From: Macrostomum lignano
Lineage: Eukaryota
Reading direction: 5' to 3'
Length of the DNA: 64,000 bases
NCBI GenBank assembly: GCA_002269645.1
Contig: NIVC01002498.1
Coordinates: 1-64,000 of the forward strand
In this document: one piece after another, positions 6,972 to 9,900 of the stretch
Position numbering within the stretch: the first letter of the stretch is position 1
Layout of the letters: each line of letters starts with the position of its first letter
Translations under genes and position numbers: made by a program
Notes under the pieces: model-generated
What the model saw: only the letters and a program-made list of their open reading frames with translations
Databases searched by the model: none
What the model was told of the DNA's origin: nothing

Positions 6972-9900
6972 GCAAACTACAAATCAGACACACTGATTTC
7001 GCAGGTGAGAAGGTTGAGCTGAACCAGGAGGAGACTCTGCTCATTATCCGCCGCCTGCACAAGGTGCTTCGGCCGTTCCTGCTACGCCGACTCAAGAAGG
7101 AGGTGGAGTCGCAGCTGCCCGACAAGGTTGAGTACGTGATCAAGTGCGATATGAGCGCCCTGCAGCGGACTCTGTACAATCACATGAGCCAGAAGGGCGT
7201 CATTCTCACTGACGGCTCCGAGAAGGACAAGAAGGTGACTGCTTGCTCGCTGATTTGCCGCTGTCTCGGGGGGGGCGTATTCTAATTTAGTGACCAACAG
7301 TCCTTCTCGTCCTGCGGCTCGCCTGACATCTGTGTTAGAGGCGACTCGATTCACCGAGAAGGCACAGCAATTTTATGTTTCTTTAATCAGTGGCTCTGCT
7401 CACAGTGATGTACTACTAATCCAATGTAACTCACTGACTTACTGAGCTGCTGGACAAAACAATTTGTAATTTTCTAAAGAGGAATAATCATATTTCTTTT
7501 AAGCTCATTGTCTCAAATCCTGAGTCATGTTTTTTAAATTTAATCCTTGGATTCTTGCTTATCTAATCATGGGATTCTCATATCCCTAATCCTAGGATTC
7601 TTATATCCCTAATCCTGATACTCTTATCCCTAATCCCGAGACTCTTTTATCCCTAATCCTGAGATTCTCATATCCCCAACCCTCGGATTCTCGTATCCCT
7701 AATCCTGGGATTCTCATATCCCTAATCCTAGGATTCTTATATCCCTAATCCTGAGATTTTCGTATCCCTAATCCTGGGATTCTCATATCCCTAATCCTAG
7801 GATTCTTATATCCCTAATCCTGAGATTTTCTTATCCCTAATCCTGAGATTTTCTTATCCCTAATCCTGAGATTTTCATATCCCTATTCCTGAGATTTTCT
7901 TATCCCTAATCCTGAGATTTTCGTATCCCTAATCCTGAGATTTTCGTATCCCTAATCCTGAGATTTTCATATCCCTAATCCTGAGATTTTCATATCCCTA
8001 ATCCTGACATTTTCGTATCCCTAATCCTGAGATTTTCATATCCCTATTCCTGAGATTTTCATATCCCTAATCCTGAGATTTTCGTATCCCTATTCCTGAG
8101 ATTTTCATATCCCTATTCCTGAGATTTTCGTATCCCTATTCCTGAGATTTTCTTATCCCTAATCCCGGGATTCTTATATTATCAAACCTGCAGTCTTGAG
8201 CAAATTGCAGAGATTTAGTTTCGACTACAACGCAAAATTTTGAGCAATTATAAATATTCAATATTTATCAATGAAAAACTGAATCGCCAATCGCTACCGC
8301 CCCCCCCCCTACACGCACACGCAGGGCAAAGGCGGAGTCCGCACCCTGATGAACACCATCATGCAGCTGCGCAAGATCTGCAACCACCCGTTCCTGTTCC
8401 CGCACATCGAGGACGCCATCACCGAGCAGAAGGGCAGCGTGCCAATCAGCGGCGTTGATCTGTTTCGCTCGTCTGGCAAGTTCGAGCTGCTGGACCGGAT
8501 CCTGCCCAAGCTGAAGGCCACCAAGCACCGGGTGCTCATCTTCTGCCAGATGACCGCCCTCATGACCATCATGCAGGACTACTTTGATCACAAGGGATTT
8601 AAGTACCTGCGGCTTGATGGCACCACCAAGGCTGAGGACAGGGGCTCCCTGCTGCAGGTGATTGCCTCCTAGTCTCTTGTCTCTGATCCCTAGTCTCGTG
8701 TCTCTGATCCCTAGTCTCTTGTCTCTGATCCCTAGTCTCGTGTCTCTGATCCCTAGTCTCGTGTCTCTGATCCCTAGTCTCTTGTCTCTGATCCCTAGTC
8801 TCGTGTCTCTGATCCCTAGTCTCTTGTCTCTGATCCCTAGTCTCGTGTCTCTGATCCCTAGTCTCTTGTCTCTGATCCCTAGTCTCTTGTCTCTGATCCC
8901 TAGTCTCGTGTCTCTGATCCCTAGTCTCTTGTCTCTGATCCCTAGTCTCTTGTCTCTGATCCCTAGTCTCTTGTCTCTGATCCCTAGTCTCGTGTCTCTG
9001 ATCCCTAGTCTCGTGTCTCTGATCCCTAGTCTCTTGTCTCTGATCCCTAGTCTCGTGTCTCTGATCCCTAGTCTCTTGTCTCTGATCCCTAGTCTCGTGT
9101 CTCTGATCCCTAGTCTCGTGTCTCTGATCCCTAGTCTCTTGTCTCTGATCCCTAGTCTCGTGTCTCTGATCCCTAGTCTCTTGTCTCTGATCTCTAGTCT
9201 CGTGTCTCTGAACCCTAGTCTCTTGTCTCTGATCCCAAATCTCTGGACTTCTGTCTTCTGCTAAGCTTTGATCCGAATCGCAGTTTTCATGGCTAATAAC
9301 AGTGGTTTGAAGTAGAATTCTCTGTCTTCAAAATCGAACTTGAAGCTTTGATGAAAAAATAAAATTCTTTATTCTCAAAAAATTCGTTTTTTGGGCCCTT
9401 CTCGTCCTGCGACTCGCCTGACACCCATGAAAGCGGCGACTCGATTCACCGAGAAGGCACAGCAGTTGGAAACTCGCTTTATTTGTTTTCAACCGGCGAA
9501 TTCACCCCAGCAAGCCAGAGCTGACATTGCATCTGTGGCTGGCATTGCTGATTTCTGGGTGGCCTGCTGGACAGATCTCTTGGGATTTGGGTTTTGGTCC
9601 CGAATTTCTAAACTTTGATCCCGAATTTATGTAATTTGATCCCGAATTTATGGCATTAGATCCCGAATTTATGGCATTAGATCCCGAATTTATGGCATTA
9701 GATCCCGAATTTATGGCATTAGATCCCGAATTTATGGCATTAGATCCCGAATTTATGGCATTAGATCCCGAATTTATGGCATTAGATCCCGAATTTATGG
9801 AATTAGATCCCGACTTTATGTGATTTGATCCAGAATTTATGGAATTTAATCCCGAACTTATGGCATTCGATCCCGAATTTATGTAATTTGATCCCGAATT

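Follow-up and report, generated by a model that had tools for sequence, protein, structure and literature searches.

Does the intronic DNA of a flatworm chromatin remodeller hold RNA genes of its own? The question is raised by a 64-kb stretch of the Macrostomum lignano genome (bases 1-64000 of contig NIVC01002498.1, assembly GCA_002269645.1; hereafter the window, meaning this stretch at its full length), in which a first-pass annotation had placed a single candidate box H/ACA small nucleolar RNA (snoRNA), predicted to pseudouridylate 5.8S ribosomal RNA (rRNA), in sense orientation within intron 3 of a SMARCA gene. Our analysis located every element of this unit (copy 1, c1) exactly where it had been placed, and it revealed a paralogous copy (c2) in intron 4, which had been overlooked and which supplied the strongest evidence. 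We conclude that c1 and c2 very probably represent a genuine pair of paralogous box H/ACA snoRNAs. With less assurance, we favor the fuller reading that these paralogous intronic RNAs would direct the conversion to pseudouridine of the second U in the AAUUG motif of 5.8S rRNA.

The predicted c1 snoRNA covers 158 nucleotides (nt) at 7302-7459 on the plus strand of intron 3, and it is also present in a paralogous M. lignano locus (L002) from position 13784. Its plus strand folded into the order hairpin, H box, hairpin and ACA, with a minimum free energy of -48 kcal/mol and a z-score of -3.2 (0 of 200 dinucleotide shuffles were as stable), and the fold of the minus strand was less exceptional (z = -2.1). 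The 5' hairpin (7302-7362) consisted of an 8-base-pair (bp) lower stem joining 7302-7309 with 7355-7362, an internal loop formed by UCCUG (7310-7314, within GTCCTGC at 7309-7315) and AUUCAC (7349-7354), and an upper stem with its loop (7315-7348). The H box ACAGCA (7364-7369), read in the sequence and conforming to the consensus ANANNA, began 1 nt past the 5' hairpin stem in both c1 and c2. Likewise, the 3' pocket strand of each copy had its first base 15 nt ahead of the H box, which satisfied the rule of 14-16 nt and bore out the pocket-to-box distance claimed previously. The 3' hairpin (7387-7453) contained an internal loop, UGCUCA opposite ACUUACU, and a 10-bp foot that ran straight into the ACA box (7454-7456), with the predicted mature 3' end at 7459, three bases on. 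Such a layout alone is weak evidence, because a loose hairpin-ANANNA-hairpin-ACA descriptor made for this analysis, itself too strict on hinge length to recover c1, gave about 22 matches in the window, mainly in G+C-rich exons. Two findings raise c1 above chance, namely the presence of a further copy in the neighboring intron and the complementarity to rRNA.

The second copy was discovered with two short probes taken from the c1 5' hairpin, each of which matched the next intron. Predicted to be a paralogous H/ACA snoRNA of 180 nt at 9397-9576 (plus strand), c2 scored 100 bits with the covariance model (E = 5e-25) and repeated the order of hairpin, ACAGCA, hairpin and ACA. The fold and the alignment to c1 placed its pocket strands UCCUG and AUUCAC at 9405-9409 and 9444-9449, and these were followed by the H box (9459-9464), an extra small hinge hairpin (GUUGGAAAC...GUUUUCAAC; 9465-9493) that is not found in c1, and a 3' hairpin lacking a canonical pocket (9494-9570). 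The ACA box (9571-9573) came directly after the foot of the 3' hairpin, giving a predicted 3' end at 9576.

The comparison of the two copies revealed a marked unevenness along their length. Across the 68-nt 5' domain, 61 positions were identical; six of the seven differences fell in the apical loop (positions 28-38), and the seventh changed a stem G.U pair to A-U. No difference at all was seen in the lower stem, in either pocket strand or in the H box, and all 16 modeled pairs of the c1 5' hairpin were maintained in both copies. The 3' domains, on the other hand, gave 62 matches, where shuffled sequences averaged 58 and reached at most 64, the terminal CUGCUGGACA being the exception. Of six pairs in the 3' hairpin foot, three were changed on their 5' side (U.G to C-G, A-U to G.U and U.G to C-G), with pairing intact. 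The 60-nt flanks of c1 and c2 were unrelated, so that the similarity runs from the base of the first hairpin to the ACA box. Judged from the two aligned sequences, this pattern of divergence is the one that purifying selection on an H/ACA guide domain would produce and that neutral duplication would not.

The gene that hosts both copies occupies 3611-15505 on the plus strand in nine coding blocks, coordinates that agreed between the annotation of contig NIVC01002498.1 and the window. The spliced 1394-aa (amino acid) translation of this SNF2-type gene was 100% identical to BOX15_Mlig016277g2 (1476 aa), a protein with matches to the QLQ, HSA, BRK, SNF2, helicase-C, SnAC and bromodomain domains; by its sequence, the host gene is the M. 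lignano BRG1/brm (SMARCA2/4) orthologue. Threading the BOX15_Mlig016277g2 protein along the window DNA gave the intron borders, with intron 3 (GT...AG) at 7235-8324 and intron 4 at 8658-10683, both on the plus strand, and thereby upheld the assignment of c1 to the sense strand of SMARCA intron 3. Both c1 and c2 occupied the sole unique island of an intron otherwise full of minisatellites with units of 21-28 nt. In intron 3, the island at 7235-7562 contained c1 and the remainder was a 23-nt minisatellite; in intron 4, the island at 9245-9592 contained c2, with minisatellites of 21-nt and 21/28-nt units on its flanks.

Searched with a covariance model of the 5' domain, the window gave only c1 and c2 (100 bits each), with the next best match at 12.6 bits, and two further copies were present in the 33-kb paralogous locus L002 (NIVC01003383.1, gene ...g3), which was about 92-97% identical to the window across colinear blocks and about 95% identical overall. 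The possibility, raised in the first-pass annotation, that the unit might be a high-copy repeat did not materialize in these sequences, as the 64-kb window and the 33-kb locus contained two copies apiece. The variants in L002 spared the boxes: the c2 H box read ACAACA instead of ACAGCA, which is still ANANNA, and the c1 ACA was unchanged though both neighboring bases differed. A metagenome scan returned 0 matches to the 5' hairpin; the seven matches obtained with a 19-mer all lacked the hairpin and were set aside as chance. As a separate observation, weak matches to box C/D snoRNA families (snoR126, snoU30 and snoZ182; E = 5-7, far below threshold) were seen at 9331-9396 on the plus strand and 7468-7553 on the minus strand. 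The former lies just upstream of c2 and contains TGATGA with no obvious box D, and both are probably chance matches.

To which RNA, then, might the shared pocket bind? Because M. lignano ribosomal DNA (rDNA) was found neither in the window, L001 and L002 nor in the searched sequence collections, proxy rRNAs were used. Scanning a collection of bacterial and archaeal genomes for GTGAAYTGCAGGACACA gave, among chance matches, contaminating eukaryotic rDNA units, several of which were confirmed by Rfam to hold complete 18S, 5.8S and 28S genes. The segment GUGAAUUGCAGGAC, which the first-pass annotation had taken from the human sequence, was indeed present in mammal-type 5.8S (L018, L066), in mollusc-type 5.8S (L059, L065) and in another invertebrate-type 5.8S (L014), the 5.8S genes of the mammal and mollusc types being Rfam-verified, and arthropod-type 5.8S (L038, L049) carried GUGAACUGCAGGAC in its place. 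These complete units are filed as prokaryotic in the GTDB species set, under Arthrobacter and Lysobacter assemblies (L018, L066 and L075), SUP05 (L059), Thiodubiliella (L065) and metagenome-assembled genomes (L014, L038 and L049), where they are host or laboratory contamination.

Every U of the complete 18S, 5.8S and 28S rRNAs from three Rfam-verified rDNA units was scanned in the canonical register, in which a U-N dinucleotide is left unpaired, the bases upstream of it pair with the 3' pocket strand and those downstream with the 5' strand. In all three GUGAAUUG-bearing units, of mammal, mollusc and a further invertebrate type, which are proxies and not M. lignano rRNA, the best match was 5.8S GUGAAU[UG]CAGGAC, with 6+6 Watson-Crick pairs and no G.U pair. 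Here AUUCAC, identical in c1 and c2, pairs with GUGAAU, and UCCUG, likewise identical, pairs with CAGGA; the sixth downstream pair, to the following C, can form only if the lower stem opens at its top pair. The runner-up sites reached 10 pairs, of which 4-5 were G.U. In 3000 trials per set, shuffled pocket strands attained at least 12 Watson-Crick pairs twice with the mollusc-type set and 0 times with the mammal-type set. The complementarity to 5.8S that the first-pass annotation had proposed thus emerged as the best single rRNA match of an unbiased scan.

Since the canonical register leaves U-G unpaired, the target would be the second U of AAUUG (human U74) rather than yeast pseudouridine 73 (Psi73), and the first U could be reached only with two unpaired guide bases at the junction. 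Of the two unpaired dinucleotides that had been considered possible, UG therefore agrees with standard geometry and UU does not; similarly, the proposed target, given as the equivalent of U73 or U74, is kept as a prediction for the second U and falls away for the yeast Psi73 position. The predicted position corresponds to an experimentally mapped pseudouridine in another kingdom, because Arabidopsis Psi78, mapped by Sun et al. 2019, lies on the uracil adjoining the equivalent of yeast Psi73, and neither a guide for it nor any plant homologue of the yeast guide snR43 is known (PMC8351944). On these sequence comparisons, the second U of 5.8S AAUUG is the best-supported reading of the pocket and a likely one. 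The G directly 3' of the predicted target U is 2'-O-methylated in human and plants, and human 5.8S U74 is not a known pseudouridine. A box C/D guide for this neighboring methylated G, which would have been an independent clue to the 5.8S sequence, was not present in the window. The 3' hairpins of c1 and c2 gave no match worth naming in the canonical register against the proxy 18S, 5.8S and 28S rRNAs. The 10-13 pairs that they reached in free registers were mutually inconsistent and so show the noise level of such searches; both 3' hairpins look like structural or orphan domains.

The proposed course of events would begin with the release of c1 and c2 from BRG1 introns 3 and 4 by splicing, debranching and exonucleolytic trimming, during which dyskerin, Nhp2, Nop10 and Gar1 would protect them, as is usual for the class. 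The M. lignano 5.8S rRNA would carry the target segment GUGAAUUGCAGGA, on which AUUCAC would pair with GUGAAU and UCCUG (plus G) with CAGGA(C). The unpaired U-G would then sit where the upper stem begins, at 15 nt from the H box, and the enzyme would isomerize to pseudouridine the second U of AAUUG, equivalent to human U74 and Arabidopsis Psi78. In this scheme we infer expression, processing, ribonucleoprotein assembly and the modification itself, and likewise what the M. lignano 5.8S reads at this site.

Several observations weigh against this reading. The 3' halves of both copies are non-canonical: c1 has a hinge of 17 nt and a 3' pocket 17 nt from the ACA box (the rule being 14-16), and c2 has a hinge with an inserted hairpin and a 3' hairpin without a real pocket. 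The case for conservation is built on two paralogues within one gene. Locus L002 adds no statistical weight to it, because its local flanks are almost equally similar, with 2 differences per 158 nt inside c1 against 7 per 147 nt outside, and 1 per 180 nt inside c2 against 1 per 216 outside. In Taenia solium and Opisthorchis felineus, the BRG1 loci yielded no homologue with the covariance model. The target segment, moreover, is not universal, since arthropod-type 5.8S reads GUGAACUG, and the 5.8S of neodermatan flatworms differs more in this segment. The comparison with Rfam that had been suggested as a check came out empty: no H/ACA family was matched in the whole window at gathering thresholds, nor over c1 or c2 even at E up to 10. 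A missing Rfam match is expected, however, because homology searches fail for flatworm snoRNAs, having recovered no known snoRNA except U3 in Schistosoma (PMC2770079).

How much room these observations leave for other explanations depends on which part of the evidence is called into question. If c1 and c2 are real H/ACA snoRNAs with another substrate, they might act on a flatworm-specific rRNA site or a small nuclear RNA, or on no substrate at all, as chaperone or orphan RNAs; the M. lignano 5.8S would then read differently in this segment or carry no modification at the site. The variation of the 5.8S segment among animal groups, the use of proxy rRNAs in place of the species' own, and the ease with which freer registers give chance rRNA matches of 10-13 bp all point in this direction. 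Yet the fixed-register match to 5.8S was unique, comprised 12 Watson-Crick pairs and was rare among shuffled pockets, the pocket strands were identical in two copies that have otherwise diverged, and the apical loops lacked a conserved CAB box (UGAG), so that we consider a different substrate unlikely. That there is no RNA gene here at all, and that an intronic segment was duplicated or gene-converted and folds and matches 5.8S by chance, seems less likely still. The abundance of loose-layout matches in the window speaks for such an accident, as does having just two independent copies in one gene without an Rfam match. Under neutral decay, however, 57 positions in stem, pocket and box would not have stayed identical as the apical loop and the whole 3' half drifted to random level, and the three one-sided changes in the 3' foot all preserve pairing. 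The similarity, furthermore, has its limits precisely at the hairpin foot and the ACA box, and the rRNA match recurs among shuffles at a frequency of about 1e-3 or less.

Intronic RNAs of other classes were also considered, namely a small Cajal body-specific RNA (scaRNA), the precursor of a microRNA and a mobile-element fragment; in their favor one could cite the stable stem-loop of about 60 nt formed by the 5' hairpin and the repeat-rich nature of the host introns. No UGAG was conserved in the apical loops of c1 and c2; the sole occurrence, at 7443 in c1, falls within the 3' hairpin, in its pocket strand and foot, and c2 has none, which makes a Cajal-body scaRNA unlikely. Unlike in a microRNA precursor, a large conserved internal loop breaks the stem, and although one microRNA-family match lay just upstream of c2, far below threshold, no Rfam family covered either copy. 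The covariance model, with its two matches each in the window and in L002, likewise speaks against this group of explanations, which we regard as very improbable. The reading that c1 and c2 are H/ACA snoRNAs directed at the second U of 5.8S AAUUG accordingly retains our preference.

The closest functional parallel is found in yeast. There, snR43 is a box H/ACA RNA that guides 5.8S Psi73 and 25S Psi966. Like c1 and c2, it belongs to the H/ACA class, and the conserved 5.8S segment on which it acts (GUGAAUUGCAG) is also the one predicted for them, but it targets the first U of AAUUG, whereas the c1/c2 pocket is predicted to select the second. Moreover, snR43 is dual-specific, whereas the c1/c2 pocket had no 28S match of at least nine pairs save a G.U-rich one of 10 pairs, and snR43 is independently transcribed in yeast, in contrast to the intronic c1 and c2. 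Neither copy showed similarity to the Rfam model of the snR43/SNORA9 family. Tested by sequence, c1 and c2 thus fail to qualify as members of the snR43 family, and the parallel drawn in the first-pass annotation survives as one of function and neighborhood but not of homology. Human SNORA69 (5.8S Psi69) and SNORA72 (Psi55), together with chicken GGgACA2 and GGgACA1, resemble c1 and c2 in being intron-encoded and in using the pocket of the 5' hairpin on 5.8S. They differ in the targeted residue, SNORA72 and SNORA69 acting on U55 and U69 compared with the predicted U74 (human numbering), and in their hosts, RPL39 and RPL30 for SNORA69 and SNORA72 compared with BRG1, and there was no match to their models. 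In Arabidopsis, Psi78 occupies the same nucleotide position, but there the modification was mapped without a known guide, whereas here a guide is predicted from sequence.

In their genomic arrangement, c1 and c2 are similar to the multi-copy intronic snoRNA families of metazoans, in that successive introns each hold one copy in sense orientation and the copies share a guide domain. Such families, however, usually reside in translation-related or non-coding hosts, whereas c1 and c2 reside in a chromatin remodeler, and the 3' domains of c1 and c2 are unrelated in sequence, unlike those of such families.

As members of a well-known class, c1 and c2 are genes of an ordinary kind and not surprising to a specialist. 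Nevertheless, flatworm snoRNAs are almost unannotated, and our literature search found neither an earlier annotation of c1 or c2 nor any paper on M. lignano snoRNAs, so that the two copies offer a concrete and testable guide-target pair in a regeneration model amenable to RNA interference and transgenesis. The 5.8S position concerned differs in its modification among lineages, with the first U pseudouridylated in yeast, the second U in Arabidopsis and neither U in human, where the G is methylated. Unique islands in introns filled with minisatellites may, in addition, represent RNA genes overlooked by protein-centered annotation. It would be a far bolder claim, and one that we hold to be improbable as it stands, that c1 and c2 are the first identified guide for the second U of 5.8S AAUUG, beside the conserved 2'-O-methylated G. 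If that were true, fungi, plants and flatworms would use unrelated guides on this helix-7 dinucleotide, which would thereby be a recurrent hotspot of modification. Likewise, a shared guide domain joined to unrelated 3' domains, one of them with an snR43-like inserted stem-loop, would then suggest that new H/ACA specificities can arise via domain swapping within one host gene.

Further observations concern the host gene and its relatives. Nearly all BRG1 introns carried a minisatellite of their own (5506-5924, 6570-6971, 7563-8179, 8668-9244, 9593-10631, 11007-11640 and 11972-12393), with periods of 4, 20, 21, 23, 25, 28 and 32 nt and at most 34 copies, save for about 100 in the 4-nt array, and the lengths of these arrays were unequal between the window and L002. 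A 600-codon Q/P-rich open frame at 1911-3710 (plus strand), in another reading frame, overlapped the annotated BRG1 start at 3611 and repeated the N-terminal BRG1 motif GYPQQ..PQMYPP.HQGY..GYYGGP.GQQQ. The BRG1 N-terminus may therefore extend further, given a frameshift or an assembly indel near 3600. A more distant M. lignano BRG1 paralogue (P0136) had 65% identity, and a BRG1 relative (P0175) was intronless. A further candidate relative (P0256; L099, JGI Ga0498913_0412160) was rejected, because it is a bacterial 44-aa protein with a DUF1501 match and a clustering artefact. Its gene adjoins an IS630 transposase gene, yet the protein sits in the 90% cluster of M. lignano BRG1.

Elsewhere in the window, a stonin-like gene with a mu-homology domain was present on the minus strand at 38411-40666 as a single open reading frame (ORF) of 751 codons, 100% identical to BOX15_Mlig034083g2. 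Its M. lignano paralogues, at 79% and 62% identity, are consistent with the genome duplication known in this species. Two near-identical ORFs in inverted orientation (18652-19029, plus strand; 21521-21907, minus strand) bracketed a segment encoding a helix-turn-helix peptide (19404-19676, minus strand) that resembles the N-terminus of Tc1/mariner transposases, and this arrangement is probably the remnant of a DNA transposon with long inverted repeats. Paralogous exons for fibrinogen-related C-terminal domains (GGGWW.NGC) were likewise inverted, at 51202-51579 on the minus strand and 55378-55755 on the plus strand, with proline-rich tandem repeats between them.

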